Assembly (NCBI GenBank): GCA_000320545.1
Contig: ADNK01000698.1
Coordinates: forward strand, 6,286-70,285
Direction: 5' to 3'
Source: Bigelowiella natans CCMP2755
Taxonomy: Eukaryota > Protista > Cercozoa
Length of the DNA stretch: 64,000 bases
The first letter of the stretch is position 1. Each line of letters starts with the position of its first letter. The translations under genes and the position numbers were made by a program. Positions 4,586 through 50,512 of this stretch are shown here, piece after piece. Under the pieces are notes generated by a model. It was not told where the DNA came from. It was given only the letters and a program-made list of their open reading frames with translations, and made no database searches.

Positions 4586-5965
4586 AATTGATTGCTGTGT
4601 TGGGGCGTGGAAAGGATTGAAAATAAAAGCGGACCTGTTTGTGCATTGATGGTGATGTGGAATGAACGCGTCTTCGTTTGTTTGTGCTAGCGTTTGTTTC
4701 TGCCTCAATCGATGTGTGCACGTGTGTGACGTTCACGCAAAAAGTGCGCACGCGCACTGAACCGAGTGCGCTTCTTGCCAACAATGCTGGAAAGGGCGGA
4801 GAGCACTTCTAGACTTGTGCATTTACTGTTGCAATCTTTTGTCAAATCGATGGCACCTGCTAGCCTGCTAGCCTGGTTCAGTGACGTCTGCACAGTTGTG
4901 TGAGACACGATGGAAAAAGGTGAGCGGGGAGGACAGGGAAGTTGTTGGAACAAAATCGTGCGATCAGAGACGGTGGCAACGCAAGTCTGGCTAGCTGGGT
5001 GCCTGGAGAACGGCGCAGCTGGCTGCTGGCCAGTTGTCAACACCCGAATTGTCCAGTGCTAGAGTGGTGTCGGACGTGCCAGGAGAACGGACGTGTGACA
5101 GCTTGCCAGCTCACCTCGTGATGAAACTCTCGTCTGGGTGGCTGGTCATCCACCTGGCAATGTGATGACGCAAGCTGCCAGACTGGAAAGTTCGTGTTTT
5201 CGTTGTGCGTCATGCGGCCAGGTTCAGCAGCTCCAGAGCTAGCTAGCTAGCTAGCTGGCAATTTGGCTAGCTGGGTGGCCAGCGCCAGTTGGACGCAACA
5301 GTTCAGACAATGCGTGTCGTTTCTCTGATGCGCACGCCAGCGTGGTGGCACGGTGCAATGGAACCATTCTGCATTGTTGGTTTCGTCTCTGGATCCATCC
5401 ACGATGACTGTTGTTGCGCCTGGAACAAGCTGGCAAGCTAGCAAGCTAGCAAGGTCCAGCAGGTCTGGCTACCTGACCAGCTGGAGGTGCGCTGACAACG
5501 CGACCAGAACGCTGCAACGCTGGAACGCAGCCAGCTGACGCGTGCTGGTCTGGTCAATTGCCAGCTGGCCAGCCTAGCAGCCTCCACAACAAGACAAGTC
5601 TGCAACTCTGGAACTGCGCAAACTAGCAAACCAGACGAAGGACGGCTGCGCGCAACGTGATTCCTAGCTAGCTAGCTCCAGCTGGCTGAGCTGGTGGCTG
5701 CCAGAGCTAGCTAGCCAGCTAGGCACACACAAACATTGCTAGATTGGCACGTCTGTGGCTCTGTGGCTGCATCTGCACCATTCTTAGCATTTCTGCATGC
5801 CAGCACATTTGTTCGTCCAGTCCGCTAGTCCGTGAAGGCAGGTCATCATGCTGAACACACATGCCAGCATGCAACAACACTGATGTCTTCAGTTGTGCAA
5901 AGGAAATGTTCCGACATTTGCTCATCAACACAAAACGTGTCGTGCATTCACAAAATCGTTGATTG

Positions 5966-8900
5966 TCATTCTTCCTCCTCATCACTGCTGCTGCTGCCGT
6001 CATCGTTGCTTTTGTTCTTTGAATCATCCTTGAGATGCATTGTTTCATGCAATGGAATGATTCTCCAGAGCTTCGAGTCGCCTTCAAGAAGCACCTAATG
6101 TCAAGCATGTCGATCATGCTTAGTGATCGCGCGAGGCAATCATTTGAACTGCAATGAAATGCAAAAGCAGAACAGAGAGCATTGTGTGTTGGGGAAAACT
6201 GAAGTCGAAACTAATTCCTTTCAGTGTTCTAACTCCTATTGAAGAAGCGACAGTGCTACCTTTGCGACGAAAAGTTCGACATTGCTAAGAGTCTCTGGCG
6301 AGTAATTGGCTTTGGCCAAGATGTGGTACTTGAGGTACACGTACGCCCAGATGCTGTGCTCTACGGTGATGTGGTGGATGAAGCCTTTGTGGTTACGGGA
6401 CTGATCGAAAGCGTGATGCCCCTTGCGGCAGATGACACACTTTGTTGTTACTTCCTCAAGCACCTGAGATTAGCCAAAAACCGTTTTTTAAAAAACAATG
6501 TAGTGGTGGAAGCTGCATAGTAACTCAGTTTCAACAGCAGCTACATGCGTGCACGTGAAAATGATACGCCCTTTTGAGTTTGGTTGGGTGTAAAATCAAA
6601 TACCCCACCAAGATGGTGGGGGAAAAATAATGAAACATCTCCAACTACAGATGTTACGTCAACCCGAAGAGAAAATACCTGATCTCTCGTTTCGCGCATC
6701 TCCGCGAATGTATCGATTATGATACCGGTGATAATAGACACCAAGATGGTGTTGATGGTAAGGAAGTAAATGAGATTGAACAACGGCGTGATGACGGGCA
6801 CAGGGTCTCGAGTGAAGACAGGGGTGTTCCGGAAGCCAAGATCCACAGCTCTCTGAACGCATCCCCACAACGTGTCGCACATGAAGACAAGATCATCGTC
6901 GACATTGTATACGATCTGGTCGCTGTTGATGAAAAGCAAGAGGCCACAATCAGGTGCCGAGGAGGATGCGAATGCTGAAAAACTAAAAAACGATTCCCTG
7001 ACCTGAAAAACACGAAGATGATGACAGCGAAGCCATAGACAAAGATGAGACCCATGAACACTGTCGCTAACAGCCTCAGATAGTGTCGATTCGTGACGAG
7101 CAAGATGTCCTTCAGGTGCGAGGAATAGGTGATGATATCAACGAGGTGAAAGGCATTCCACATGGGCGTGTGTACAGCAGCAAGAATCGCAAAGATTCCG
7201 TAGACGACGTAATATTTTATCATAGAGAGCCCCAGGGCGCGACGTGTAAGCGTGGTATAACGCCTGAGCTTTTGCACGAAGCTCTCATTATTCTGCCGCA
7301 GCCGCATCTTGTCAAGTGCAAAACCTGTGTGATGAAACCCATGATCGTCATCATCACCGACCTCATCATTTTATCATTTACCAACGGGAATTGCAGTAGC
7401 CTTTCCGTTGCCGACATTCGTTGTCGGAGGCTCCTCGTAATAGTTCGCAAGGCCATTCGAGAGACCCCAAGACACCACCTGGAACACCACCGATGTTGAA
7501 CATTTTCATGCCACACGGACGAAAGCGAGCGCATCCATGACAGCGTGAAGGAAGGAATGAGAAGACATCAACGGCTATGATGGTGACTACCATGAGCGTA
7601 GCAAATCCAAGATGAAAGAACGAGAGAAGACGAAAGACTAAGGAGTACGGATAGCAGCCTTTCTTCTCCTCATCGGAGCCTATCAGCTGAATGCCGTCGA
7701 AACCCAGCCGACAGGTTGCCGTGCCTGTACAACAAACAGTATCACAAATAGGGGGGGAGGTGGGAGAGTGAGTAGGGAGTAGAAAATCTTTTTAGATTTA
7801 GCTACTTTCTAACAACAGGCGGCTCAGTGCTGCACCCCCTCTTTCCTTTGTAACGAAGTTCGCAAGATAACACATCAAACACAACCGACCGAGGATGCGG
7901 AACTCGAAGAATTCGTCTTGGACGGTATCTGTTGTCCCCCAGCTTATCAGCAGCCCATTGATGATAAGCACCACGCAATACGTGATGATCCATAACTCGT
8001 CAAAGTGACCTCGGAGAAAATGAGTCATTTGAACCACCTGCACAAACAACAGCACCAAGAAGTTAGCAAAGGTCTATGTTTTTATCAAGATGAGTTTCAT
8101 CTGATCTCTTACCATATTACAGGTGCAGAATAACACTTGCTCTCAACTCTGCCCTCTCCCCTTCCCTCTCCCATTTCATGACATCAAGTGCTTGTAGCAA
8201 CTTACGTTCTTCTCGTGCTCCTCGAAACCAAAATTTCGAAGAAAGTTTGGCATCCGCACGTTGTGAAACTCGGAAATTTTCCACAATTGCGCCGATTTTT
8301 GCATGAGGTCGATGATGCGTTTGTCGTGGCGCTTCTCTCCGATTCTGACGCAGGAATCGCGGATCTGGCGTTTCATTTCGACGGCACTACCAGTCTCACC
8401 CAACGTAAAGAACCAAGGCTTTAAGAAGAAAACACGCTCGTTGCGCTCATGATGCCCGTTGTTGAGTTTCACCTCGCATTGCATTAGCATTTGTTCGAGA
8501 TAATACCTTGAAAATAAAAAAAGAGGGAAGGGGAGAGATTGCGGAGACTCATTAATATCGACGAGACCAGAACAATGTCGATGACTACCTAAAAAAATGA
8601 TGTAAGGCACATGGTGTAGATCGACAACACCCACGCAAAACACAGCATCTTCCTAACCATCCACACTCCCGACGGGAGAAACGACAAAATAAAGGAGGAG
8701 GAGGAGGAGGAGGGGGAAGAGGAGGAAAAACTCGAAAACCGAACATATATCTGCCAATATGCGCTCATCGCTTCACTCACTGCGGCTCGATCTTCGGGTT
8801 ATACTTCCATTCCGAGACTTTCTGCTTCCAACGGGACAGGTAGGTCGACACGTTCTTCACCTTCGACTTGTCTGAGGCCTCCACCACCGTGGTCAGGTAG

Positions 8901-10496
8901 GCGAAGTGCTCGAGGATGAGATCTAGGTGCTTCGATTGCGTGAGCGACTTGATATCCGCACTGTCTTTCTCCAACAGCGCTTGCTTTTGGCACTCACTGT
9001 GGAAGGAGAGGAGATTGTAAACCGTGCGAATGGGCGTGAGGCGACTCCCTGGCCGAGATCTTGCAGCGGCCTCTCGCTGCGCGGAGATGCTGTCTTTGTT
9101 CAACAGTGATGCTTGGAACGCAATCGTTTTCGCGTTTTGGCCGTCTATAACAGATCGCAGCAGACGCATGATATGGAGCTCGAGGTCATGCAGCTGATAT
9201 CTCAACTCTTCTTTCTCCTTTCTTTTCATCTCCAAGAGTTTCTTCTTTTTCTTCTGCCTTCGCCTATTATCGGCTCGGCTTGGCGCGCGTGTTCGACGCG
9301 GCGTGTTTGACGTTCCCATCCTACCGGGAGGGGTAGATCCATCGCGTCCTCCTCTATATCCCCCGCCATACCCATTATGTGGCGAGCTTTTCATCTCGTA
9401 CATTTCGATTCCTTTGCGAGTGGGCGTCTGGGGTGTCATCGTCGGCTTTGAGACTTCAAGTCTAAGGTCTTTACTGTACATATCGTCCTTAGCAGTCACC
9501 GCTGGTGTGGCACCCACAGCTGTGCTCACTATCTCAAAATCGGCGGTGCCAGTTGTGGGGGCGGTCTCAATCGTCGCATCGCTTCTTGGAGGATACCTTT
9601 GTATTTGTTAATGCTCTCATGAAGGCAGTGATATGCGTTGAATGTCGAAGAATGTGTGATATGTCATTTGATTCGTGTTTGTTTGCATGTGCATGTGCAG
9701 GTATTCACACGTGCCTGCAAAAAATCACGCTAGCGTGCCTACATGTGCACAGCAGATGGATTTGTACCGACACTATCGAATGCAAAAATGTAGTCCAGGA
9801 AGACCATCCCACATAGCCCGCCCCCCCGCCCACATGATATAAACTTTTTCAACAACAATTCAAGTATGCACGCTGCTTTACTTATTTTTCAGCATATTCC
9901 CGTCGTCCTCCATGCCTTCATCGTCGTCGTCATCGCCATCGTCGTTGTCACTGTTGTCTTTCGCACTACACTTGTGGCAGTGATCCCCATCTCCCGTCTT
10001 CATCTTCTTCTTCATGGAAGTTTCAGGGAAACCAATCTTCAAGTACTTCATCAGACACATCCTCAGCATCTCATAGCAAGCGTCAAGAAGGTGCGGCTGA
10101 GTGCCAATTAAGTTTTGATTCGAAGTGTTTGGCCCGTAGCAGACTTCACTGAGAACCTTTTGATGTGTTGCATGTGTTGCATGATCCAAACAATTCATAC
10201 ACGTGCACGTGTACACATTGCATTCCCCAAGCACCCCTTACCCCCCTCCTCTTTTACAAAAAATGGAAGGAGCGCATCAGCAGTAAATTTATAATCACGT
10301 CTGTCTGCGACGGGCTTTGGATTGAAATAAATGAACATATTTTCCTCCGGTGAAACAATGCTGTGACCCACCCTAAGAGCGTTCCGCATGAGCTGGAGCG
10401 ATGTTGATTGGAGTGTTGCAGTGGTCTCTGAGTTGATTACTGTGTCAACAAGCTCTCCGTGTGTCACGGCAATAAACCAGGTGACCTAAATATATG

Positions 10497-10531
<35 letters not shown>

Positions 10532-10636
10532 AATAGAATTTAATATCATCAACACTTGTCCGCGCTACTCGTGCTTTCATGATTAGGAGAACAAATGGTA
10601 CTGTAGGTATTATAAGCCTCCTCCTATTTACTACTA

Positions 10637-10679
<43 letters not shown>

Positions 10680-12346
10680 TACCTCAGACACCAAGTTGTG
10701 GTCTCGGTCGCCTTCCTGATCGCGGAGATAGTCAGCTGCATCGCCGCCATTCCCTCCCATACAGAGCCTGTACATAAATCCTAGAGCAAGTTCTAGCATA
10801 TGCACCTCGTCGGGGTCGTGCTAATGAATGGACGAATGAGGAGAAGGGGGGTGGGAAGAGGATCATGTGACGTTTAGCCCATTTTGCTTTGGTTTACATC
10901 ATTTCCGCAATCTTTATCATCAGTTTTCTTCATCATCATCTGTGTCGATTCGATGGATTTACTTTCTAACGTCCCCTCCTCGCACGTAGTGTGACACATC
11001 TACTTACCTGAAGATTCATGGTTGTGCTTTGATCTTTGTGCACGCGAATATTTCTCGAGAAATCCTGAAGGATGTCTTTTAGCACAGCAAGAACGCGATG
11101 GTCTTCATCGCTCTGCATAAGGCTCAGAAATTCCATTTGAATCAATGCATCGCCCGTGTTTAGCAGACAATTAGCCATGCGTAGGCCTAGCGATGTCATC
11201 GTCCCTAGTTATAGTAGTGAGCCAAAATTTTAGTTTAGGTTGCAGCATCATGCAGAGCGCCGTGAGGTCACATTCATTGCCATCATCATGATTCTCGATG
11301 GTATTACCACATTATTTCAGTGGTTATCATCATCATCATCATCATCATCATCACCCTTCCTAGTCTTCCTCCCATGAAGATCGAAGGAATCCATTATCAT
11401 GGTCAGAGACAGCTTCGCAAACTTAAACTCCGTGGCCATTAGCGTCATCATCACCACGTTGTGGGTATCTGCAATCGGCGATCTGTGCTTGCTGAAGACC
11501 TGTTTTTGATAAGCGAGTACCATGATTTGAGGCTGCTACATGTGTGTGAAACTTCCTAATCGAAGGAAGGGAAATACACATTATGGATACCTTCGATAAA
11601 GGCCGTGAGCGATTGTGTCGCATGAATCTAAGAAAGAATAACGTCAATATTATCGCCTTAAGAGTATGAATTTTGGAGAGCGATAACTTTCAATACTTAC
11701 AACCACAAACGCGCGCAACCACGCACACACAGGCGCGCGCGCGCGCACGCCACGCCTGCACCCACACAACGATACAAAGGCACAAGCCACTTAGCTAACA
11801 ACTCAACTGCTCAAGCATTCTAATGATCGCCTGGTAAAGAATGAGCGAGACCCCCTCCCTCTGCGTCTTGATGAGGGAGTATATGCTATCGAACATAATC
11901 GTCATCTCATAGTAGTCATCGTCTTCACGTTGCTGCTGCTGCTGATGTGTCATCAATTTTCCCCCATGTCGCATCATCGCTAACGCTAGAGAGCTGGACG
12001 TGACTCTCGGCATACGGTTCGCGTCTTCATCGAGTTTGATCGCTGTTGCACTCGCCCTCCCAGCAATTGGTGACATGACTACGAAGGAATGGGAGGGGGA
12101 GGAGGTTTTGACTATTAACGGTTCTAAAAGGGAATCTGCAATTCTTTATATGCCAAATGGCTGTTTAATGCATCCTCCTCCCTCAAAAACATCCTAGAAA
12201 AAAAGCCCCGAGAGATATACAATAATTCTAATTTGGGTAATGATCAAACCTGAGCTAGTCTGAAGGGCAAAGCTCGGGGCGTGTAGGCCATTGTCAACGG
12301 CATTGTTATTATTGAATGCCTACAAGGTGAGTTGACAGAGATAGAG

Positions 12347-12391
<45 letters not shown>

Positions 12392-12983: not shown

Positions 12984-13072
<89 letters not shown>

Positions 13073-14163: not shown

Positions 14164-14196
<33 letters not shown>

Positions 14197-14954: not shown

Positions 14955-14993
<39 letters not shown>

Positions 14994-16071: not shown

Positions 16072-16109
<38 letters not shown>

Positions 16110-19100: not shown

Positions 19101-20926
19101 TGAAAGCGAGGTCGAGAGGGGGGAGAGGGAGGAAATTTTGCCTAGAGGAGGAATACAATTATCGACGAAAGACAGAGGAAGCCAAAAAAAAAAAAAGCCG
19201 GAAAACATCATCAAAATCATTCAAAACATCGACAGCGGTTGGCGAGATCGCATAATCTTACTGTCGTCAATTTCCAGCAGGTTGTTGGCCTCGAGCAACT
19301 CAAACACCTTTATTTGCGCCTCCCGATTTGGTACGTGAACGCCCCTCTCCGGGCTCATAATGCGACGAAGCAGGCACAATATGTTTTCGCAAGTGTAGTA
19401 CCTGGAAACGTGTGTGTTGAGAAAATAAAATATTAGTGTTTTGGACACATCGGTAAGACGATTCGGCGTGTATGTCACATTGCGATCATCATTTAAATGG
19501 AACGATTATTTATTTCTTCCCTTTCAAATAGTTTCTCAATGGTTTCAGCATTCGAATTTGTCAACGTCGTCGTCGTCATTGTCGTAATTATCGTTCCCCC
19601 TACTACAGCTCCTTCTACAACTACTACTCGTCTGATTGAAAGAAGCGCAGGCGAAGGTAAGAAGCAAAGAGAGTGGTAATCTGTGCTTCCTGAAACAAAC
19701 GGCAAAAGTGCGGCCGAACGCGGCAGATGGCGAGTAGAATATCAATGACTCGATTCGCACAAGAGTACCTACATGCACACAACAAAGAGAAAAATACGAT
19801 TAGTATTACGAAAACAAAGGCCGTCAACGAGCAATGATGTTTTGCGTTATGTATTGTCTCGGCTTGCACGAAGAGGGTGTTGCCGTATTTCGCTACGAAC
19901 ACTGTTGGAACGGTATAATAGTTCACCAAAGAGTGGGTTCTTTTTTGCAATGTGATCATCGCTAAATACTCATCATCATTTTCTTATTCTTCCCAATTTT
20001 CAAAAGTAAGTGTTAATGTATTACTCCCAGGGTGTTGGCTCCTCAGCCTCGTCGTCCGGTGTGCAGAATCGTATCAGATTCATGCATGTTTGAGGGAATT
20101 TCACCTACACATAATAATAATGCGGCACAACAGTAGAACGGGGGGGGGAGGAGGGAGGGAGGGGTGAATAAATATCGCCCAATATAGCTTTGTTTTAATC
20201 TCAACTGCCCTACCGAATCTAACAGCTCCACGTTCTTAGCGCAGAGCGCTGGCGAGCGAGCGGAAAGGTATGGCCTCTCCCACGCCACATCGATCCCAAT
20301 AAAGATGAATAGAATACGCAGGCAATGACTTATCACTGTCTCCAACGCCTCCTTCCCATCTCTATCGCTGTATTCACCGAGCCTCATCGTCATCTTTCGA
20401 ACCGTGGAGTCGAGGGAGGGGCGTGCGAGGGGTGAGTGAGGGGTGGAAGAGTAATCGGATTGTGGCGAAGCCACGCTAAGCACGCGTCCCAGACCTTCAT
20501 GAGGAGAGGGAGGTGGAGGTTAGTGAGCGGATATTTCCAAATTGCATCAACTTTTTTAATGTTATATTATGTCTTTCCACTCCGAACAACTTTCTGTCTT
20601 CTTCGTGTTTGCAGCTCTAACTGTACCCCACAATGCAAGATAATCTCTGCTCTTCTAAACAAAACACAAATCATTCCTTATCACCTGGAATTCCTCCCCC
20701 CCCGCGATGATGCACGTCTGGAGTCGTTACAGTAAGGTTGAGGTAGGATGAAGGCGACCGCCCCTCCGCCCCCGCCCCCACTGTTTCGTCTCGATCTACC
20801 CCTGAGGCTACTCCATATTGGCAAGATTTGTTCTTTCTTCGGTGAACTCCACCGCCCCCTGTGCCCCATCGTAACGAGGCGGAGGAAAGCATCGATGTCA
20901 TCTTGAAAGTGTACAAACAACACACG

Positions 20927-20960
<34 letters not shown>

Positions 20961-21390: not shown

Positions 21391-21471
<81 letters not shown>

Positions 21472-22571: not shown

Positions 22572-22616
<45 letters not shown>

Positions 22617-24514: not shown

Positions 24515-24565
<51 letters not shown>

Positions 24566-30666: not shown

Positions 30667-31831
30667 TTGGAGGATAGCAGTCGGTATTCAAAAGAGGTGA
30701 TTCGTTTTGTCATGCAATCACTCACTCGTAGCTGTAATTGCTGCTGAAAGCAAGAGCCGCCATCAACTTCCCGTCTAATTTTTTCCCGGCGGCTCAATGC
30801 ACGTCAAGCCATTGCTGCACAATGAACTCTTGGAAGCAAGCGCACGGGTCGAATGTATCTCGTCGGCCACGGAGGACCGATGTCGTCCTATTTAAAGCAG
30901 GTTAAGATGCCTCATTTCTCATTTGGTCAATAATGTCTATTTTTATTTCGCGACAACAAAAACACGTCAAACGATGATAGAATCTCCTTTAATTTTAGAT
31001 TCCATATGGTGGTCTCTGTTATTTCGTTTACAGATCTGAGAACGTTTGTCGCTTTAAGAAATTGCACAGTAATGTTCATAAAGAACTCCTCTTGTGGAAA
31101 TGATAGGCCGAAATATTCGTACTAAAAAAAGGTTTTTAGAAAAATCTTTTACGTTTTGGGAAATACCGGGCTAATCCCGAAGTATATGCAAGAGAATAGG
31201 TGAATTTTGAAGTCGCATTAGGCGAACATCCTTTTGGGACCACGTTCTGATCTTATCCGGTGATATTTCCACAAAAAGGGTAAAATTATCGCATTATACC
31301 TTGACGACATGTCCAGATTGCTGAAATCGATGGGAATACGCCGGGGTACAGCTTAGTTCATTGCGAATGTTATGCATCCGAAGTGCTCAAAACCCAAGAA
31401 GCTGCGGTTAGCCCTCCCTCTCTCGTGTTGATGCATGTATCGTGACTTCAATAACTTAAAATGCATTGGATGGGTGTAGAATTTCATTTATATGGGACAT
31501 TTATTTGTCTTGCAAACGCAAGAGTGCTCCATTAGTCGACACTACCTTTACAGTGTGAGGGGGGTACCACACAACACAATTCTATGGCATTGCGAATTAA
31601 AAGCTGGAGAAGCGAGGCTTCGATACTCTATTAGAGCCGCAAAAGTCCTGGCGTAGAGCACGCATTCGCAAACATAGGCTAATCAATATATATAAGTTCA
31701 CCAATGAACCAGAGAAAGATAATGCTTTTATGATAGGTTGGTTTTGCTTCTCTTTACTCGCAGGGGACGTACAGGGACTCAGCAGAATGCAGATAATATC
31801 ACGCGAACGTGACCCTTTGGTCCGTGGATCG
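30667..31831. promoter_or_regulatory. Divergent (head-to-head) intergenic region between IP3R-like and CPOX
   Basis: AT-rich, microsatellite-poor spacer between opposite 5' ends. Promoter function is inferred from position only. Confidence 0.45.
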
Positions 31832-33553: not shown

Positions 33554-33594
<41 letters not shown>

Positions 33595-36371
33595 ACCAAG
33601 CTAGTAGTAGTGCCTATCTTGATACTTTTCTCTTCTTAGGCATTAATCTTTCCGTTCTGAAAGGCGCTTTACCATACGAGGTGTGAACTTGTTTTTGGGT
33701 TGCCGCACCAGTGCTAGTTGTGTGTTTATTCATACCCGTCTCTGAATCTCCTCTTTCTCTCTCTCCTTCTCTTTCTCTTTCTCTTTCTACCGTTCCTGAT
33801 CCTTCGTATTTGTTTCTGTGTGGGCTTCCCAATTGCCTTAGTTTATTGCTAAGCGCGGCGAGTGCAAAGGCTTCAAAGAAGGTAACGTTTACCAGTTCAC
33901 AAGACCAAACCTGTTCATCACACGATTTTGTTTTAAATTCAAACTCATTTTGGCATCTCTCCTTACTCCCTCTAAGGCGAAAGGATACCCTACGTGGGAA
34001 TGGGCCTCAGCTCTGTGATTCACGTGCGAATGATGAGTTTACTCGACAACATGATGATGACGATGATGATAATGGTGGCGGTGGCGGCGGTGGTGATAGT
34101 GACGGCGATTGTCATGAAGAATGGCGACCATTTCCAAGGAGAAAGGGAAGGAGAATGAAGAAGAAGGAGAAGAAGAAGAAAGAGAAGAAGAAGAAGGAGA
34201 AGAAGAAGGAGAAGACAAATCTTGTGAGAGAAGCAAGAGAACGCACCTATTTTCTAGGGCGCATACATATAGTCACATTGCACATCCAGAGCGCGGATCG
34301 CAAATATTAGGCTCTTCCTTTTGCCTTTACGCACGCATGTTCTAGTTTGAATTGCTTGCTGATGGGTGCCTGCTGCTATTAACAGCCCCGAAATCCATTC
34401 GCACCGACGATGCACTTCAACTACCGGCTCTTTCAAACCGAGTGCGGCGTGTGGTGGTTTGGAGGAGGCACGGATATTACTCCAAGCTACATCGATAAGG
34501 ATGACTTGAAGCTCTTCCACGGTATTCGATCCCAAATTTGCACTGCGCTGGTATTTGACTCTGATAATGTACCCGTGTTTGTTGTGCTTGATTGCCGTTC
34601 TTGGTATGTTTCTCTCGCATAACAAAAGGCACATACAAGGAGGTAACGTTTCTGATAGCGGCAAGCAAATGCCGCGCCACGCAGCACACCGTCCATGCCC
34701 TGCTACTGCTGATGATATATTCTTGCTGCTGCTAAATGTCTAACAACAAAGAGAATTTAATCCGAAAATCAATGAGTTTCTCCGGTCGACAATCCGCCAA
34801 GGGTGGTTGTCGATGATGTAGCCATCGTTATGCGGCCTCAGCCCGCCTTGAGCGGATGCCGATTTTGCTGCCTCATCAGGTGTGCGACAAGCATGATCCA
34901 GAGTTCTATCCCAAATTTAAGAAATGGGCTGATGAGTACTTTGTCATCAAGCACAGGGGAGAAACAAGAGGCCTTGGTCATATGTCCCTCGCACTATTTT
35001 TCACCATAACGGCACGCATCCGCAATAGAGAACACGAGATGCTGAGAATACCAAAACTGTTGTTTTGCCTTGTGCTATACGGCCTTTTGGTCAGCTACTG
35101 CCATGCTAATTGCTGCATCAACAACTACATTAGGTGGCATTTTCTCGGACGATATGAATGATCGGTGCTATATTTTTCTATATAATATTAATGGTGGTGG
35201 TGGTGGTGGTAGCTAATGGTGGTGAGAATAAACAGGGAGTCAAGAGAAAATATTCTTTGCCATGATCATATCTTCCATGTCAGCGATCCGGAGAAGCTAC
35301 TCGAATTCTACACAGACTGTGTCAATGTGAGTGATGATACTTGTCTCTCCTGATTGATGCCTTGAAGCCATGCCACATCCCCGTTCCCTATGTAACACCC
35401 GCCGTACGAGTGACAAATCTTTTTGGTTTTCACCTTAATTTAGAGCGTCGTGCCCGCGTACGTTCCTATAGTGAAGAAGCACATGAACGATGAGTTCACC
35501 GCTCAGCAAAAGGAGTGGCAGGGGATGCGGAGAGGCCGGTACAAATGTCGCATCTACCATTTTCTCTCTTAAAAGCAGCTCGCCTCGCTCTAATACAGAA
35601 TATGTACCAAAACTTAAGTCCTGAATGTGACCGAGAAAAACGCTATTGAACTGTTGCTTCCACACCTCTCTTCCTCTAATCCCCTCTCCTCCTCCTCTTC
35701 TTCCAACTTCTACTTATGGTGTCGCAGGTACGTTGAGTTTAATGTAGTGTACGATCGTGGGACTATCTTTGGCTTGAAAATGGTAGAAGTTATAGAGAAA
35801 TGTTAGTGTTCATAGGAATAATTCAAATATTTATATGCGGTGTGACGATGTGACGGTGATGATGGAGGATGGAGAAAGAAATCGATTAGGTTAGGGTACT
35901 AAATCTTTGGTATGACGTAGCAGCAGTATATTGGGTGGTGGTGATATTTGTCTTTCATCCTCCCTTCCCCGCTCAAAATTCTGGAAAGCTCTAACTCAGC
36001 CCTTGCTTCTCTTCTGTCTTTTGCTGTCTGTGTGTGTGTGTGTGTGTGTGTCTCCGTATCGCACGTGCTATTATCAGGGCCTTAACACCGAACGCATTCT
36101 GATGTCCCTTCCACTTCAAGCTAGATGGGAATATGACCACCAGATAGAGCCAGGTAGTATGAAAGGAAGAGGAGGAGCGAGGCGGGGGCACAATTGAGAT
36201 TTCCATGCTATCACAGCTGATTTTCTCTATTGATACTAGTTGCCCATATCTAGCATATCCATACACAGAGAGAAGTGTGAGCGTGTATTTGTGTTGTGCT
36301 GCCTACCCTTCACAGGCTCTCCTGAGGCAGACATCATGGATGCTTTCAAGAATCCGAGGGAATGGGTTTAG
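31832..36371 (+). CDS. CPOX: Oxygen-dependent coproporphyrinogen III oxidase with bipartite (signal + transit) plastid-targeting leader
   Basis: Spliced exons give [124 protein letters not shown]. Confidence 0.95.
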
Positions 36372-37114
36372 AAACGGATGGGCAGGAGAGAATAATGTCG
36401 GTCTAATACGCTCATAGTTGAAGCATGCTCATTGCACTCGTTCGCCATGCCACAATGTTGTCTGAATGCACAGTACATAATGCGTGAAAGTGATTGGGAA
36501 AAATTAAACATTTCATTACATACACCGTCTCATAATAATGCGCGTGGAAAGTGAAGTCTGTCATTGATCATCCTGCGCGCATGCATGCATTGTGGCATGC
36601 AACAAATCATGTGGACATGTTTGTCACTAGCTCTAGAAGACATGCTAGCATGTGCATGTACGTCTCATGTGTGCTGCACAAAATTGCAAATCCATTTTGG
36701 GCAATCGATCTAGCAATGGCATGTGCATCTCTAAATCTATGCATCTAACTAGCTAGATGTACCATGATCGAATGCAACACAGCTAGAGATAGGCACACGT
36801 ACGTGGAAGGCTGAAAGATGACATGACCATTGGATTCACATCTGAACTTGGTGCAGTAGCGCACCCCCGTTTGCGACAAGCTTGCTAGCTAGAGATGACG
36901 ATGTGCTCAACGCTCGCTAGCGCGTGCGATGCAGTCGCGCGTGCACTCGTAGGTCGATCTAGATCGACATGTGACGACATCACATCGCACACGTAAGAAC
37001 GAGTAACATCGACAAAATGCTTATCGTGCTAAAGATAAAGGCTCATAGATTTGATGGACCAGAAGCTATCATTCAGGATTTCTCTAGCTCTGCTGTCTGG
37101 GTGGTTCCTATTTC

Positions 37115-38019: not shown

Positions 38020-39010
38020 ATGGGAGGAGCACAATGCACTGGAAGGGGCGGACGACTCAAGGTGGAATCCAAGCTACCTGCGTTCAACGATGTTAAGGGT
38101 CGATCAGTGCCGCCTGGATCCATTGGTACTGCTGCTACTACTATTCCTACTAGATAGACCTTCATGAAGATGACGAATGCTTCTTACATTGCCGCATCTT
38201 TCCGAAGTTGCCGTGACCGGCGCATCAGGATTCATTGGAAGCCACGTCGTGAAAGCGTTGTTGGCAGCTGGATACATCGTGCGAGCCTGCGTTAGAGATG
38301 CTGAGAGCAAGGTGAGTACGAATGCCCTGTGGCAGTAGTTTATAATAGCCATGCTTATTAAACGCATGCAATCCGCAACAGGAAAAGACGGCCCATTTGA
38401 CTGCGATGAAAATTGGCAGTGGAGCGAAATTGGAGCTTTTTTCAGCGGACCTATTCAAGTCTGGAAGGTCTGATATTTATAGATGATCGCCCTCTTTTTC
38501 ACATGCAAAGCTGACGCCCCATCCTGCCAAATGTAGCTATGATTCTGCGTTCGATGGAGCTGACGCTGTAATTCACTGCGCGGCTGTCGTTGCCAATAAG
38601 AACTCGGTAAGAATTCACAACTTGAGTATTCATGCATGTTGTCTTGCCATGTTGCTTCAGAAAGGAACAGCGAAGTACAGTCCACATTGTTCTTGGAAGT
38701 GTAATTAACGCGTGCTTGCAAAGGTGAAAGGGGACCCATATGAGGCAATTGTATCGCCTAGTGTAAAAGGTATTTGAGAGACTTAAATTATCGTAATTTA
38801 TTCATCAAAACGAACATTAATGAATACGTGTGTACGACATGTTGTAGGCACCCAAAATGTAACTACATCGATACACAAGGCAAACTCAGTAAAGCGGGTT
38901 ATTCACACGAGCTCTCTTGCTGCTATTCAGGTTGCTGATCATACATACATACACCCAATAAAGTCCCTCTATATTTCACATACCCACATATACACACACA
39001 TATTTAATAC

Positions 39011-39052
<42 letters not shown>

Positions 39053-40590: not shown

Positions 40591-40626
<36 letters not shown>

Positions 40627-40842
40627 ATAGTAGTAGTAGTAGTAACACAAGGGAGAAGTATATTATGTCGTCCACAACTGTCTCAAACATAACTCTACGA
40701 GATCTACGATCGGGTTGTTACGTGACGTCATTTTTCCTTACAGGTTCTCGGCATTAAGTATGCTGATTTCGATGACACACTGAGAGCTACTATCGACTCT
40801 ATGGTTACCACCAATTTTGTTAAAGTCAAGAGAAAGGAATAG
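38020..40842 (+). CDS. NAD(P)-dependent extended short-chain reductase (dihydroflavonol reductase / cinnamoyl-CoA reductase / aldehyde reductase-like)
   Basis: PPGSI|VAVTGASGFIGSHVVKALLAAGYIVRACVRD, DGADAVIHCAA, VKRVIHTSSLAA, YGLGK (YxxxK), VVINPCVVLG, DVIDVATAHVEAL, last exon VLGIKY..FVKVKRKE*. Confidence 0.9.
40592..40644 (+). repeat. (TAG)n intronic microsatellite
   Basis: Nearly pure TAG run. Confidence 0.95.
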
Positions 40843-41700
40843 TCGCGTTGCTTTTTAGTATAATTCTGCATCGTTGAAGATTTAGGATCGCTAGATAGGG
40901 CTGTAATATGGTTTATTCTAGTAGGCGCCTAAGCGCTTGATAATTACGTACTACATGGCCTTCGCACTGCTCCTGCAGGCATACCGAATCGTGTTAGTGC
41001 ACGATTGCTTGCATTTGGCGCGGCATATCCATCCATGCAATATCATCATCATGCACTGAAATCTGACATTTAGTAGCGTTATTTCATATGCACATGTGGC
41101 GTGCTAGCGCCATGCTAGAATGGCACACATCTGGACATGTACAGGTCTAGAGGTGCGCGCAGCAGAACTACTAGACTAGTATATACTGGACAAAGTCGAA
41201 CCATCGACCTAAAGCGCGATGTAATATCGATATCAAAAATGTGCTAGTGCGTCATTATAAGGACATGCTTGCATGTATACATGCGCACAGCATGCTAGCA
41301 TGCAAATGAGCTAGAGAGGCAAAGCTAGCAAAGGTTGTCATGATAGACATGCAACATTGTATATGCATGATTATGATAGACATGCGGTGTCTCCGGCCGC
41401 TCATGCTAGCGTTGTGCATGCGTCACTTGCTGTGATTATGTAGTGATGGAGAAAGCATGCGCACGCATGTGTGTGTTGTGCACGTCATACACCTTTAGAC
41501 ATGCTAGAATGTACTTGATGTACGTGCAGCAGTGAAAATGAACACTACCGCATCATACTAGCAAGCATGCATGAAAACAATAGAATCGGACAACAATTGG
41601 CATGATAAAAAATTCAATTGGTCTACTTCTTTCAAATTTGTAAAATGGTGCGAGCAAGAATCACGCTCCTATTCGTGTGTTGTGCGCTGCAAGCAGCGAG

Positions 41701-43728: not shown

Positions 43729-43804
<76 letters not shown>

Positions 43805-43945
43805 AAGCTAGGCATCGTGAGAGAGAGGAGTACGCAGCGGTAGCAGCACCTGAATCCTGCAGCCCGTGTTTGCTTGCAGGTTTCTAATCGTTTCGCCTCC
43901 TTTCCCAATCAGAAGGCCAACCTGTAAGATAGATAGATCATCAAT

Positions 43946-43984
<39 letters not shown>

Positions 43985-44729
43985 CTCGTGGAGATGCTAC
44001 ATCGAGACGACGATGAGTCCTTCATGGGGGGAAACAGGAGGAAGATAACGCGTGTGCATTGGGGGGGGGGGGGGGGGGCTGCTTACTTTATCTTGAGGAA
44101 TTTGGATATGTTTTTGTGCGGTGTCTCCTCGATCTGGTTGTAGGACGATAATGGAGAGTCGCAGCAGCAGCAGCAGCATCAACAACAGATTAGCGTCGCT
44201 GCCCATGGTGGCACACAGGAGACACAATACCATTGGACCACCGCCACCACCCCGCTATTCTACTCTTTTCGCGCGGGCGCGGCATGATCATCATCATTAT
44301 TGTAGTAATTCTTCATCATCATCCTCGTCATGGGTGGGGGTTTTACGTAACATACTTCCTCCCCCTCCGCCTTGATGCCTCTGCCTACTCTCTATCAGTC
44401 CGAAAACCTGTGAGGAGCGAATATAGATCATCAGAGGAAGAAGGTGGTGGTGGAAAATGGCAATGACACACGGCTGCTCCCATGCACCAGATACACTCTA
44501 TCATCGAACGAGAAGACGCATCCTCTCTCCTCATCTCAATCCCGCACCTCTTTCTCAACCAAACGGATTTGCTCTTCACTGCCGCTGAGCGTCACCATCC
44601 TGTTTGGGGACCCAGGGCGTGGCTCCTTCGCAATCTGGATGCGAGCTCCGGTATCAGCCTGGAAAGAAGAATAATAAGAAGAAGGCAAAAGGAGCAAAGG
44701 AATCAGATCAGAGAACAGCGTGGATGTGC

Positions 44730-44781
<52 letters not shown>

Positions 44782-45035
44782 GTGTGCTGCTCACATATAT
44801 GGCAGAATTGCGATAGTGAGTATGATACAACATACCTGAAGGCTTTTTATTGTCTCCCCTCCCCTTCCGATAACGAGGCCCACCTGCCATGGAGGTCACT
44901 CACTCAGCATCAAAAATTGGTCGTGGTAGTAGGTTATTATGATAGAGGAGGGGGAGAACATGTGCAAATTTGTACTTTGTCATTTGGAATCTTTATATCC
45001 TTGGAGCTTGTGAAGCCTAAACCTGGTAATGACGA

Positions 45036-45066
<31 letters not shown>

Positions 45067-45266
45067 AAGAAGAAGATCAAGAACAATAACAAGAGATTCA
45101 GGGCACCGTACGCGGAGCACAAAAACCACCTTGCCGATAATCAATCATCATCCCATCACACAACATAATAATGAAGCCCCTATGCATTCGAGTAAGTAAA
45201 GCAAAGCTGCTGAATAATGCTCACCGGATCGATCTCCTCCTGTCCTTACTGAGGGGTCGAATCCTG

Positions 45267-45298
<32 letters not shown>

Positions 45299-46984
45299 TA
45301 TCATCGTTATATAATCATTTCCCCTTGTCGAATTACGCCTCACGTTCCGTAATTTAGCGTGTGAGAGGCAGGCACTAACTGACCTTCCGTGACTTTCGAA
45401 TCGTACAAGCTTGCAGGCAGGTCGGGGGGGGCTAAGATTGGGTATTTATGAAAATAAGTTCCGGGGATTTATGTGCGGAATTTCGCTCTCGGCCCCCATT
45501 CTTTACTTCGCATCGTTTCTTACTAACCACTGCCAGTGAGCTCTGTCAGCTGCTCACGTTTCTTCGCGTACAGATTTTCCTGATGAATAGCGCAGAAGGA
45601 GAGGGAAAGAGTTTTGTATCAGCGCTGCTGCACCCTCCTCATGACGACTGTCCTCCTCGTTCCCCATCGCTATTATTTGTTTAGCGCTGGCCGTTAAAAC
45701 AAATGCAAATGCACTCTTACTACCCTGTTGAAGATGAGGTCATTGACAAGCTTCTCGCCATCTTTGAGCTGAAAAAATAATTGAGCATAGCTTCAGTCAG
45801 GCCAACAATATCTAATGATGTATGATCGTTTTGCAGGGAGCAAGACACAGCAGCCTCATTTGCCCCATCTTCTCTTTCCAGGTTATCATTTCTATACAGC
45901 AGCTACTGCAGCAGCCGCCACCTGTTGTTCAGTATCTGCCACCACAAGGACATGCAAAGGTTCGTCTGGGGCGTCATCATTTCCTAATAAAAAACAAAGA
46001 GTCCTCAGAGCACCGCAGAGCTTCTACTACTCAAAATATTCTCGACGATACCGTCTTTGCTGGAACCCTTGCCTCGGATGATGAACTTCGCACCACTTTT
46101 CTGCGACATTTCCTAATTTACGTGTTCAGTATATCAGACCCCAAAACCCCAACCAACTTGAAAGCATTGAATTCTAGGTGATCTACACCGCAAGACCGGT
46201 TGTTATAACTCAGTGAATAACCCTAATGCCCCTTCTCAATAAACAAGCAATCTCTACACCTTGATGGTCTTTCCGGAGGGGCCAATCAGCAACCCGAGGA
46301 AGTTGATATCAGGATATGTCTGAGGAAATAGAGAAACAATCGCGAATTTAAACCCATAAGACACAGGCCGAGATGGAGAGCTATTAAAAACAAAAATGAG
46401 AGCGGAGGATAAGTACAGCCGAGTGATTGTGTTGCATTAATCCACATCAACACAACCTGGACTGGGATGTTGATCTTTGTTCTCTTCTTGTCACCATGCA
46501 TTGCTCCAGAGCTGATTGGCATCTGCATCTGCATTGTTGGTACCCCAGCTCCCCCCGGGCCTCCCGCTGAAATTAACCATAATAATATGTGACTTCCCCC
46601 GCAATGGTCGATGAGCATGGCCTCACGTGCTCGTGAGAAATAGTTGAGTGAGTGCAACGTATCATTTTTTATGGAATGTTCCCCAGTAATAACAATTGCA
46701 TTTAAATCTAGGTTTAACTGCATCATCCGAAAACACGGGAACAGCCATCTTGCTGATTAGATATACAGTGGAAAAGAGTAACAACCGTCGCCCCCCTTTC
46801 GTTTGCAACATCCTTACACTAATCCTATCAACATGCTTGAAAACTTACAGCCGAGCTGCCCTGAGATCCTATTAGCTATCTCTTGCGCACGAGCTTTTGC
46901 CTGAGCAAGAATCGTTGCCATGTCCACTCCTCCACCAGACGAGGACGACGCTGCCGCGGGCTTCTCGCCCCATCTTGATGCCAT
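41701..46984 (-). CDS. Multi-KH RNA-binding protein, FUBP/KHSRP-like, with an SF1/STAR-type first KH and a Q/G/Y/P-rich C-terminus
   Basis: MASRWGE..AQAKARAQEIANRI. KH1: KINIPVQ|TYPDINFLGLLIGPSGKTIK..IRGKGSSKD..DEPLHVLV. KH2: IPNDK|VGLVIGRGGETIKSLQ|ADTGARIQI. KH3: VGLLIGKGGETIRNLQANTGCRIQ|VTRD. Low-complexity tail ends ANKRQRV*. Confidence 0.85.
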
Positions 46985-47527
46985 CGTTTTACCTCTTTGA
47001 AGTACAGTTACGTTTCCTGGATCATAAGAATAAATTTGTTACATCATTCATGTCGACTTCCCGACTTCCCTCAGCATTCTCTCCCCCGCCCCACAATATT
47101 ATCTCGCACCGCGCTCCCCACCTTCTCCGAGAGCGAAGCGTGGGCCACTTACTTTTCACCAACTTCCCTGCAGAACATCGTACAAAATATCGCTATTTAT
47201 TTGCCCTCTAGTCTATATTTATCTGTCGCAGATTACTAATATCCTGTCTTTCGCGTATATAGGTTCGAAAGTATCCCTGCCGGTAGGCTTGAATTGTTGC
47301 ACGCGGAAAATTGCGTGAGCCAAAGCCAGGATTCTTGAGTTCAATGTGAATCCCGGTTTTCTTTACTTTTTTAATGAATTAAAGGCGATTTTGGGCATTT
47401 TTGGGTATCGCTCCCTCACGCACCCTTCACGCATATCCAAGCGGGCGAGGAGCAAGCAAGCTGAGGGGAAGGATCAAACACCTCCGCTTCGAGGACAAAA
47501 TCTTCACCGTTTGTACACCTCCCAACA
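46985..47527. promoter_or_regulatory. Short divergent spacer between the KH gene and RNPS1 (~540 bp)
   Basis: Opposite start codons. Bidirectional promoter is inferred. Confidence 0.45.
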
Positions 47528-48456
47528 ATGCCACGGTCTCCTTCGCCTTCCTCCTCATCCAGGAGCCGCTCCTCTAGTCGCTCCAGGAGTCCTAGGAAAG
47601 ACACCGGTGCGAGAAAAGGTGCTCCCCTTCGTGTTCGCTAGTAAAATAGTCGAGATGAAAATGTCAACCCTTTTCGAATTTTGACCCAAGCTCACTCTCT
47701 CGCAACTTCGCATCCCACTCGTAAATTTTTGTCAGCCGGGAACGAAAACACGATCCTACACGTCACTAACTTGACAAGGAATGTCAATAAGGTTGCTAGC
47801 ATTAAATGTGACAATTCTTTACTTCGACTTTTCAACGCTTATTTTCGTTGTGGCACCGCCGTGCATCGAAGATATTAGAGGAAAAACTTACTGGTTCGTT
47901 CCTCCCTCGTGCGAAATGTAATATAGGGTCATCTGGAAGAAATATTTGGCAACTATGGAAAAGTAAAGGACGTAGAACTGGGAATAGATGAGAAGGTTAA
48001 TAATATTTTAAACCAACGACGACATGAGCAGTTTAGATCAGCCGTGGAGGCTTTACTTTGCGATCTTCTTCTAAACTCCACATGGTGATACCTCAGGTGA
48101 AGCTCCCGCTGGGATACGCTTTCGTTGAAATGGAAGACAAGGACGGTGCAGAAAAGGTGGTTCCGCCTGAAAATGACGTCCTGAGTGGGCCTTGTGTCTA
48201 ATAATTGCGCGTACATTGCAGGCCTTGAAGTACATGGATTCGGGACAAATAGATGGAAACAAGCTCCGAGTGAAATACAAGTTAGTTGCGAATAGCCGTC
48301 GGAGCCCTGATCGCGGCAGGCGGGAGAGGAGTCCAAATCGTCGTGCACCTCAGCGTAGAGGAGGAGGAGGACGGAGCCCCCCCCGGAGGTTGTTGGGCAT
48401 GAATATGAGGAATTCCAAGTCCTTTTTCCTGATGAACGATGTCTAGTCTGTGTTCG

Positions 48457-48502
<46 letters not shown>

Positions 48503-48826
48503 GCTCTCTTAGACCCTCTTCCACACTAAAAACAACAACATGATGTAAATTATTTATCTCTCAGGCGTGTGCCTGTTCGTCGAAGTCGGTCACCTCGCAG
48601 AGGCCCAAGGCGTGGACGATCTCCTCCGCGAAGAGGGGGGCCACGACGACGCTCGCCTCGTCGAGGAAGGTCGCCTGTCCGACGCCCTCGCAGATCGAGA
48701 TCGCGCGGCCGTGGAAGAGGGCGCCAGCCAAGGAGAAGGTCAATGTCGTCCTCAAGTGATGACTCGAGAAGCCGGTCTCGTTCAGGGTCTGACTCTGACT
48801 CTGGAAGATCAAGATCCCGATCTTAA
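47528..48826 (+). CDS. RNPS1: RNPS1/SR45-like RRM + RS protein (ASAP/EJC component)
   Basis: Ser-rich N-terminus [30 protein letters not shown]|GHLEEIFGNYGKV..LPLGYAFVEM..|ALKYMDSGQIDGN, then an RS/RP-rich C-terminus. Confidence 0.92.
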
Positions 48827-49104
48827 GAAGTACTAGTAGTGGAGTGGCATCAGTAGCCTGCTCTCCGAAGCTTCGTTTGCCGCCCTCGTTAGTTAGTATC
48901 GAACGAAAATGCCATATTTTTAGCTAAGGTAACATCTTATGATCTGTCTAATTCCTCGCGTCCTAGTACCATCTTGACCGCAGGTTTGGTTGCAAAGCTT
49001 GCATTGTGAAGCGAATGTAGAAATATTCATGTTGACAATTACGATTTCAATACTGCAGAATGCATGTTATGTATTATTGTATATGTATACACACACACAC
49101 ACAC

Positions 49105-49160
<56 letters not shown>

Positions 49161-49303
49161 TGTAGATAGAGAAAGAGAGAGAAGTGATGACATTTCATCA
49201 GCAGAATCAACAACAACGACAAACACCTTTACATTTTTGCACGCGAGACCTAATTATTTGAGTCGTGCTGGCGCACGTAGTTGTTAATAATGATGGGCCA
49301 CAC

Positions 49304-49338
49304 AACGTAAGGGTGTGCAAAACGTAAGGGTGTGCAAA
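49304..49338 (+). repeat. 17 bp tandem duplication
   Basis: aacgtaagggtgtgcaa occurs twice. Confidence 0.9.
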
Positions 49339-49935
49339 CCATGCTGCTAGGCAAATTTAAAACAGCGCATGCTAAATGCACACGTACGTGTAGGATCACT
49401 GCACATAGCTAGACAGCACAATGCGAACAAAGGCAATAATAATGCTGTGTGTGCTGGGCGCATGTGTTTGCATGCCTGCACGTTGTATATGCTAGTATGC
49501 TTGCACAATCTTGCATTATTCTAGACATCAATGTACTTTCTATATAAGCAACCAGAAGCTAGTCAGAAACTAGTCACACTAAGTGCCGGATAAGCGCATC
49601 ATGCTATGCTAGCATGCGCGCGCAGTATGATTATCGGTCAAACTGCACGATCGATGCGGATGTTGTACGTGCGTGCTGTCGATCTAACATGTCTAGATGT
49701 CACAATACACCGCGTAGGTATCGCGTGCATGTTGACCGTGATTGTCGTGCAGTCGATCACGCGTGCGGAAGCACATGTCATGCTTACTTATAACACTTTG
49801 ACTTAGGCTACATTTAAAAGCACGTATGATGCTACGTACATTCACAAATGTGCATTGTTTGTATATGGCCACATATATATGCTGTTTTCATGCATGCGCC
49901 ATGTGACCAAGGAAACAAATAGATACAATTTAAGC

Positions 49936-50361
49936 GCTGTAGCCGCTGCATTGCATAGCTACATCAGGATGACCATTGAAACAATTTAAACATTTCATTA
50001 CATCCGTCTCATATATATGCTGTAGCCGCTGCATTGCACAGCTACATCAGGATGACCATTGAAAAAATTTAATTTGTTCATTACATCCGTCTCATATATA
50101 TATGCATACACATAGCGCATATATGTGTACACAACTAATGACTTAAAAAAGGGCTCGCACCGGCTGCGTGCACTGCCCGACATCGACGACTGGACATGCT
50201 AGCATGGATGCTTTCAAATGCATGAAACACATTGTGGAAAAAACAAACACACACACACACACACACAACATAAGGGCTGTAGCCGCAGCTTTGAACAGCT
50301 ACATCAGGATGACCATTGAAAATATTTAATCAATTCATTACATCGCCATCCGTCTCATATA

Positions 50362-50365
<4 letters not shown>
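49936..50365 (+). repeat. ~83 bp repeat, three copies (49936 and 50019 in tandem, 50276 dispersed), with an internal hairpin
   Basis: gctgtagccgc...gctacatcaggatgaccattgaaa...ttcattacat..ccgtctcatatata, with TGTAGC/GCTACA inverted arms. Confidence 0.9.
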
Positions 50366-50402
<37 letters not shown>

Positions 50403-50512
50403 CACACGTGTACGTGTGTGCAAATCCCATTATGGCACACATTGCTATGCCACGGACGATATCAGACGATTATGTATGTCGTTTCAATTTTGCAACATGC
50501 TCCTGCCCTAAC

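Follow-up and report, generated by a model that had tools for sequence, protein, structure and literature searches.

The stretch analysed here, 64,000 nucleotides of Bigelowiella natans CCMP2755 (contig ADNK01000698.1, positions 6,286 to 70,285 of the forward strand; hereafter the window), carries islands of unusual composition, rich in CTAG, CATG and TGCA, in every spacer between genes that converge tail to tail and in no spacer between genes that diverge head to head. The same islands hold stereotyped scars, in which CTAG lies between two copies of the same four bases (NNNN-CTAG-NNNN). The signature probably marks DNA outside both transcribed regions and promoters, in which mobile elements insert, undergo editing at TpA and decay, a reading to which we give a probability of about 60%. 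The initial annotation of the window had instead tied the signature to convergent termination, a proposal that does not fit a full island found in an apparently head-to-tail spacer of a second contig.

The window is intron-rich eukaryotic DNA with a GC content of 47%. The strands of nine genes, read by protein motifs, alternate + - + - from start to end, resulting in four tail-to-tail and four head-to-head junctions, and the earlier gene map agrees with this reading. No head-to-tail junction is present among the nine genes read (the window beyond its first 1.9 kb), and thus the window alone gives no means of telling a convergent position from one that simply lies past the tail of a gene. The eight spacers are the following.

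4586 to 5965, no strand: tail-to-tail spacer 1, the most heavily edited island, with GC 0.54 and a TpA ratio of 0.37.
36372 to 37114, no strand: tail-to-tail spacer 2, with the island core at about 36560-36990 and 130-190 ordinary bases after each stop codon.
40843 to 41700, no strand: tail-to-tail spacer 3, with the core at about 40930-41560, scar starts at 41143, 41167 and 41291, and a GC dinucleotide ratio of 1.96.
48827 to 50512, no strand: tail-to-tail spacer 4, which shows little editing (TpA ratio 1.12) and is rich in AT (GC 0.40), with scar starts at 49488, 49689 and 50195.
30750 to 31400 (approximate), no strand: head-to-head spacer separating the IP3R-like gene from the + gene that comes next, without signature or scar.
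38446 to 38819 (approximate), no strand: head-to-head spacer without scar; its 18.7 CATG+TGCA per kb is the head-to-head maximum and lies within the background range.
47000 to 47350, no strand: head-to-head spacer between the multi-KH (-) and RRM/RS (+) genes, without signature.
61300 to 61560, no strand: head-to-head spacer between the myosin (-) and DEAD-box helicase (+) genes, with zero CATG, TGCA and CTAG.

CATG, CTAG and TGCA together reach a mean of 5.05 per 400 bases of the window (standard deviation 4.5). All 400-base stretches scoring at least 17 lie inside the four tail-to-tail spacers, with peaks of 31 at 36401-37000 and 41001-41600, and the counts of all four spacers are unmatched by any background stretch of equal length, in line with the enrichment claimed for them by the initial annotation. 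Its companion claim, that head-to-head spacers lack the signature, also stands, since all four fall within the background range (fractions of background stretches matching their counts, 0.65, 0.08, 0.48 and 1.0). The dinucleotides display the same division. Observed/expected ratios in the tail-to-tail spacers are 1.5-1.6 for CA/TG, 0.46-0.63 for CC/GG and 1.45-1.96 for GC, versus 0.92-1.22, 0.84-1.10 and 0.88-1.31, respectively, in the head-to-head spacers. Strong loss of TpA within the window is confined to spacer 1, where the ratio falls further to 0.05 when TpA inside CTAG is excluded. Divergent spacers had been described as keeping TpA and mostly keeping CCGG; they do keep TpA (0.64-0.92), but so do spacers 2 to 4 (0.73-1.12), and CCGG is rare throughout the window, at 0.26 of its expected count in the islands and 0.42 elsewhere. 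Decay driven by methylation, as had been suggested, has left no mark in spacers 2 to 4, where the CpG ratio is 0.96-1.05; the ratio is 0.72 in spacer 1.

The signature is composed of separable layers, namely an excess of alternating purine-pyrimidine words with few CC or GG, the 8-base NNNN-CTAG-NNNN scars, and the loss of TpA. The top enriched four-letter words (TGCA, ATGC, CATG, GTGC, CACA, GCGC and ATAT) all alternate purine and pyrimidine, and alternation accounts for 62-68% of steps in the islands versus 49% overall. Only CTAG, TATA, CTGG and ATAT are well above the prediction from their three-letter parts (at least 1.8-fold). Thus, the excess of CATG and TGCA is compositional and CTAG forms a layer of its own. 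The islands range from AT-rich and TpA-rich through to GC-rich and TpA-free. At a small scale the alternating layer is present in transcribed DNA too, as observed in one short patch.

9672 to 9760, no strand: TGCATG-rich patch in an intron of the IP3R-like gene, without scar.

The ACATG-rich, intron-like segment at 2834-3060 was rejected as an instance of the signature because its CC+GG count is normal.

The 21 perfect scars of the window are confined to the four tail-to-tail spacers, which make up 4,667 bases; the other 59,333 bases have none. For comparison one further contig, C2411 (132,391 bases), was included, which together with the window gives 196 kb and roughly 18 islands. Identical 4-base flanks surround 21 of the 149 CTAG of the window and 110 CTAG in the 196 kb, where 0.4% is expected, and the genome holds 3,828 occurrences of CATGCTAGCATG against 7 of the reversed control. 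Scars start 124 to 860 bases past stop codons and none of the 110 is located in an intron. Spacer 1 contains 14 perfect scars, starting between 4805 and 5821, and 7 more whose core now reads CTGG or CCAG; spacer 2 contains one perfect scar (CATG-CTAG-CATG at 36641) and five with one mismatch. The targets prefer CWWG, base 1 of the duplication being C in 58% and base 4 being G in 61%. CATG and CTAG each provide 16 of the 110 duplications, ten times their local frequency, and scars recur at the same site. Flanking duplications are also found around 11 of 114 CTGG/CCAG cores, versus 2.7% in the background, which indicates that the scars themselves were later altered by TpA change. The stereotyped 8-base insertions and the TpA to CpA/TpG changes uphold the earlier view that the spacers record heritable mutational processes and not a conserved motif.

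Cut-and-paste transposons of the Tc1 type target TA and leave an excision footprint, TA-CATG-TA, to which the scars bear a resemblance. Both display a target duplication around a short palindrome, possibly made of two bases from each inverted end (CT...AG in the scars), and the scar target is weakly palindromic and scars are recurrent at one site. In contrast, the scar duplication measures 4 bases instead of 2, the 196 kb yielded neither a parent element nor inverted ends or a transposase, and no new scar appeared in the 3,132 generations of the mutation-accumulation experiment considered below.

C2411 carries 89 scars in about 15 clusters. Reading of the flanks assigns its islands at 13.4-15.7k, 19.6-21.3k, 42.2-44.3k, 102.0-103.6k and 118.7-119.7k to convergent spacers. 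Three of four islands that had appeared to lie between genes of the same strand proved convergent once small - strand genes were recognised; these genes include a VPS37-like gene (Mod_r, E=0.001), a DAP-like gene (Pfam DAP, E=0.001) and an ABCC transporter. The small DAP1 (death-associated protein)-like gene at C2411:113975-114355, on the - strand and with the C-terminus ...IQQPRK, changed the orientation call of the neighbouring island.

The spacer at C2411:106315-108261 is apparently head-to-tail, with both flanking genes on the + strand according to motifs read by eye. To its left lies a + strand coiled-coil gene that starts with Met-Ala-Lys-Lys, has GT...AG introns and ends at the stop codon 106312-106314. 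The right-hand gene, on the + strand and starting at 108262, has an F-box-like motif that is divided between two exons, a reading for which a PDB sequence search and Pfam gave no support. A full island occupies the tail-side 1.3 kb, with 6 scars, GC 0.56, a TpA ratio of 0.33, CA/TG of 1.64 and CC/GG of 0.60, and the 611 bases preceding the next start codon contain zero CTAG. Scars or islands are found in none of the 8 head-to-head spacers of the window and C2411. Tandem spacers sharing the signature genome-wide, or a lack of association with orientation, were the outcomes that the initial annotation had set against its own proposal; the signature is present in this one tandem spacer, on the tail side only, and the association with orientation holds in the window. 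A signature tied to convergent termination is therefore contradicted by this island, a single example with strands assigned by eye.

Extended homology among the spacers, which the initial annotation had not seen, is revealed by BLAST among them, as dispersed repeats are common to the islands. The most abundant is a family of approximately 117 bases, with the following representatives in the window.

49900 to 50020, + strand: full-length copy of the ~117-base repeat, in spacer 4.
36493 to 36534, + strand: 42-base fragment of the same family, in spacer 2, 83% identical to 49975-50013.

In spacer 4 a copy without its 5' part (50019-50101) follows the full one head-to-tail, and 50265-50363 holds a third and older copy. 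All three have a TA-rich tail behind them, and intact (TA)n runs are present at 49108-49159 and 50370-50399. The family has 17 matches in the 196 kb, all in islands (the three copies of spacer 4, the fragment of spacer 2 and 13 matches in six C2411 islands, for instance those at L005:9130-9251 and 9505-9621) and none in genes, introns or head-to-head spacers. At least 1,516 candidate copies are present in the genome, and many of the 40 that were scored are 95-99% identical. Copies lacking the 5' part retain a common 3' end (query positions 37-119, 41-119, 46-119 and 55-118), TA-rich tails come after ...CCGTCTCA, and copies can sit head-to-tail, sometimes within the tail of another copy. Several blocks, GCGCTGTAGCCGCTG and GATGACCATTGAA among them, are invariant, or nearly so, even in old copies. 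No inverted ends were seen by eye, no stable RNA fold is predicted (z = -0.66), and Rfam gives only weak, below-threshold matches over 49700-50520, located on neighbouring simple repeats.

From its sequence pattern the family looks like a SINE-like retroposon (short interspersed element). Copies lacking the 5' part, a kept 3' end, a simple-repeat tail, high copy number and nesting are shared with such elements and with microsatellite-targeting long interspersed elements (LINEs). In contrast with SINEs, RNA polymerase III boxes, a partner LINE and clear target duplications could not be demonstrated from the three full copies, although no search for LINEs was made. Another dispersed family, roughly 440 bases long, is represented in the genome by about 20 copies that are 76-93% identical, two of which lie in different convergent islands (C2411:42834-43271 and 20467-20897).

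Changes at TpA are in excess among the repeat copies. Across ten aligned 117-base copies, transitions affect 34 of 178 TpA bases (19%) versus 35 of 484 other A/T bases (7%; Fisher p=4e-5), and in the orientation of the element the TpA changes comprise 26 T-to-C and 8 A-to-G. A simulation in which 90% of the TpA of the weakly edited C2411:53150-54341 were converted results in CA/TG of 1.9, CC/GG of 0.55, GC of 1.4 and, per kb, 32 CATG+TGCA, values near those of real islands. When a head-to-head spacer is treated likewise, island composition is not reproduced, and the starting DNA must therefore be AT-rich, poor in CC/GG and rich in TA runs. Such DNA is supplied by the tails of the retroposon-like repeats and by TA microsatellites.

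Hypermutation of TpA to TpG or CpA has been reported for B. natans by Mettrop et al. in a mutation-accumulation experiment (bioRxiv 10.64898/2026.01.13.699255), where its frequency is raised approximately 1,000-fold in two inserts, one from a giant virus (186 kb, transcriptionally silent) and one from a virophage (25 kb). The same study describes 124 TpA-poor clusters of at least 3 kb each, with TpA-poor genes enriched in transposase and reverse-transcriptase domains (10.64898/2026.01.13.699255). Its cut-offs for TpA hypermutation (TpA <=0.43 and CpA+TpG >=1.52) include spacer 1, at 0.37 and 1.61, and the island of the head-to-tail spacer, at 0.33 and 1.64, while spacers 2 to 4 are at or just below the CpA+TpG value (1.51-1.52) and well above that of TpA (0.73-1.12). 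Spacer 1 and the head-to-tail island share with the viral inserts the species, the change itself and low TpA with high CpA+TpG, a mark that the study also links to transposon-type genes. In contrast, gene orientation, downstream islands, CTAG scars and the 117-base repeat are not mentioned in that study (10.64898/2026.01.13.699255).

The tables of the experiment list 43 point mutations and 17 insertions or deletions (indels) in intergenic DNA versus 16 and 1 in an equal amount of intron (10.64898/2026.01.13.699255), so that the difference between the two is at least partly mutational and not due to selection alone. At most 2 of the 71 mutations outside both viral regions are TpA events away from virus-like DNA (10.64898/2026.01.13.699255), and ordinary spacers are therefore not now edited at the rate of the viral inserts. 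As a separate observation, 7 of the 10 de novo insertions of at least 2 bases end in ACA (+GACA, +CAACA, +ACA, +ACACA, +TGTTTGTAACA, +TACGCGCAACA and +CATTACA), and one multi-base change reads TGGC>AACA (Table S2, 10.64898/2026.01.13.699255). The ACA-ending insertions look like a second stereotyped insertion process.

A mechanism with three steps would unite these observations. In a compact genome, the islands would be the only DNA that is neither transcribed nor promoter, located beyond the 3' untranslated regions of the genes. TA-tailed retroposon-like and other repeats would insert there and supply AT-rich, alternating purine-pyrimidine DNA. TpA to CpA/TpG editing would turn the TA runs into strings rich in CATG, TGCA and GpC and, as this change makes no CC or GG, both of these and CCGG would stay scarce. 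Lastly, a putative enzyme with a 4-base stagger at CWWG would leave the 8-base scars, consisting of a 4-base duplication around CTAG. By inference, the islands draw mainly on the repeats as raw material, editing comes after insertion, and the whole process is confined by silence of the DNA or by selection. The orientation rule most likely arises as a by-product and does not point to a system coupled to termination. Tail-to-tail spacers would consist wholly of such DNA and head-to-head spacers entirely of promoter, while head-to-tail spacers would hold it on the tail side only, a prediction backed by one example read by eye. As a genome defence that introduces transitions at one dinucleotide in repeated or foreign DNA and skews dinucleotide ratios, the process would resemble fungal repeat-induced point mutation (RIP). 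In contrast, RIP changes CpA to TpA and raises AT, whereas in the islands TpA is lost, CpA/TpG are gained, GC rises to 0.54-0.56 and single-copy DNA is affected.

Several points weigh against this reading. Recognisable repeats cover only part of 8 of the roughly 18 islands, and none is found in spacers 1 and 3 or in the head-to-tail island. Scars represent only 1-8% of island length, the share that is lost on their removal, and on this ground they were rejected as the main source of the island palindromes. The 196 kb yielded no intact element bounded by CT...AG and a 4-base duplication, the candidates being microsatellite or CTAG-palindrome artefacts, and open frames inside the islands had no match among transposon proteins. 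Spacers 3 and 4 have normal TpA levels, so that TpA change alone is insufficient for their composition, and the ten repeat copies compared are non-independent, with a direction of change that cannot be fixed at some sites. None of the 21 de novo indels of the published lines is an 8-base CTAG insertion, the callability of islands in those lines not being established; with almost no TpA change in spacers either, both processes may be episodic or old. Finally, one head-to-tail spacer is established, its downstream gene being without database support, and the strands depend on motifs read by eye, statistical callers having failed.

Relaxed selection alone, by which ordinary mutation (slippage and small insertions) would shape the islands without mobile DNA or targeting, is an unlikely alternative in view of the introns. 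These are also weakly constrained, yet they hold 0 of the 110 scars and 0 of the 17 repeat matches and acquired 17 times fewer indels than intergenic DNA in the minimal-selection lines; moreover the scar is a stereotyped event with a target preference, unlike generic slippage. What relaxed selection does account for is the avoidance of untranslated regions and promoters by the islands, together with de novo insertions that are mostly short alternating units (+ACA, +ACACA, +TGTG and +AC) and the intergenic location of 17 of the 21 indels. That the islands are functional, selected as terminators, insulators or chromatin boundaries that adopt the Z-form, exclude nucleosomes or absorb supercoiling, appears very improbable. 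Their composition is consistent in every tail-to-tail spacer without a shared order, purine and pyrimidine alternate at 62-68% of steps against 49% overall, and parts of the 117-base repeat do not vary among ten copies whose overall similarity is only 70-95%. However, no motif is common to all islands, composition extends from AT-rich and TpA-rich to GC-rich and TpA-free, scars and repeat copies decay as in unconstrained DNA, the repeat has neither a stable RNA fold nor an Rfam match, and intact (TA)n and (CA)n runs are equally common in introns.

Collision or read-through of convergent transcription might, by way of double-stranded RNA, small RNAs, R-loops or supercoiling, recruit a mutator to the termination zone. 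In both fission yeast and budding yeast, a chromatin state involving heterochromatin and cohesin is tied to tail-to-tail gene pairs, and a system of this kind is what the initial annotation had in mind. Yeast systems are not known to leave sequence scars and, as far as sequence can be read here, a head-to-tail spacer behaves like the convergent ones although it has no convergent partner. The signature is present in 4 of 4 tail-to-tail spacers of the window and in 6 read on C2411, as expected from such a mutator, and a strand polarity points in the same direction. Over the 0.5-0.9 kb that follow the + gene, TG is more frequent than CA in spacer 1 (TG:CA 33:10 on the left), at C2411:101600-103970 and in the head-to-tail island (first quarter, C2411:106315-106800), the ratio being about 3:1 beside the + gene in all three. 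The bias then flips in spacer 1 (26:31 on the right) and at C2411:101600-103970 (below 1 at the far side), which fits A-to-G change on a displaced coding strand, and pooled left and right spacer halves differ (Fisher p=0.02). However, this polarity is driven by 2 of 11 spacers, the expected direction is displayed by 14 of 22 half-spacers (sign test p=0.29, Wilcoxon p=0.19) and gene bodies have no coding-strand bias (ratio 0.97); it is a lead and not support for the idea. In addition, the scars lie in mid-spacer and not at the expected overlap of 3' ends, and the measured hypermutation targets viral inserts of up to 186 kb, only 2 TpA events lying in DNA that lacks virus-like genes. A targeting role for convergent transcription thus has no support, is unnecessary to the explanation and conflicts with the one head-to-tail example, and we consider it distinctly unlikely.

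Within the preferred reading of insertion, editing and decay, it is possible, if doubtful, that TpA editing is the adenine-deaminase counterpart of APOBEC3 restriction, directed at single-stranded DNA of mobile elements. Such a deaminase would act either on first-strand complementary DNA, while an element retroposes, or on the strand that read-through transcription displaces, and would explain both the 26 to 8 bias of T-to-C over A-to-G and the TG/CA polarity, set by the adjacent gene, of the three heavily edited islands. If so, the islands would be the record of a strand-specific DNA-editing defence not described in eukaryotes, and the CTAG scars would reflect a second, separate enzyme activity. 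The genome encodes an A_deamin (ADAR/ADAT1-type) adenosine deaminase, at G000:C2414:14438-15741, in three exons (best E=4.6e-14). This gene and an ADAT2-like one named by Mettrop et al. are candidate deaminases.

The strands of the nine genes of the window were assigned by eye from protein motifs after statistical strand callers had been rejected. A self-trained hexamer model, a periodic Markov model, a 7-state model and a 53-state gene model all miscalled real genes, calling the antisense of the myosin, multi-KH and RS-domain genes + strand genes. Pfam searches of flanking open frames gave mostly no matches. The genes are as follows.

Ending at 4585, + strand: gene assigned by motif reading.
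5966 to about 30.7k, - strand: IP3R-like gene, with RIH_assoc and ion-channel S6 matches.
Ending at 36371, + strand: gene assigned by motif reading.
From 37115, - strand: gene assigned by motif reading.
Ending at 40842, + strand: gene assigned by motif reading.
41701 to about 46990, - strand: gene of a multi-KH protein, with several KH motifs and a Gly/Tyr/Gln-rich tail.
Ending at 48826, + strand: gene of an RRM and RS domain protein, with RNP motifs and an RS domain.
50513 to about 61.3k, - strand: myosin gene, with the P-loop GESGAGKT at 59729-59821 and a Pfam myosin head.
Right of the 61300-61560 spacer, + strand: DEAD-box helicase gene, RGG-rich.

A separate gene at 5966-9550, which would create a head-to-tail junction at 9.6-9.9 kb, was rejected, because the ion-channel S6 match lies downstream of the RIH_assoc match and 5966 to about 30.7k is thus a single gene. 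In the multi-KH protein, which is FUBP/KSRP-like, the KH domains are followed by a long Gly/Tyr/Gln/Pro-rich tail, and the antisense strand of its gene was scored as coding by every statistical model. Long trinucleotide repeats at 1734-4175 keep several frames open on both strands and raise coding scores. Eight successive alternations of strand have a probability of approximately 0.4% under random orientation; C2411 also alternates often, with small hidden - strand genes.

If the preferred reading is true, TpA hypermutation, a very abundant small repeat and the CTAG scars, so far seen apart, would be parts of a single process by which the alga keeps mobile DNA in the unused DNA behind the genes of its compact genome and then edits it beyond recognition. 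The "antiviral" hypermutation would in that case have left its imprint on much more of the genome than the 124 clusters.

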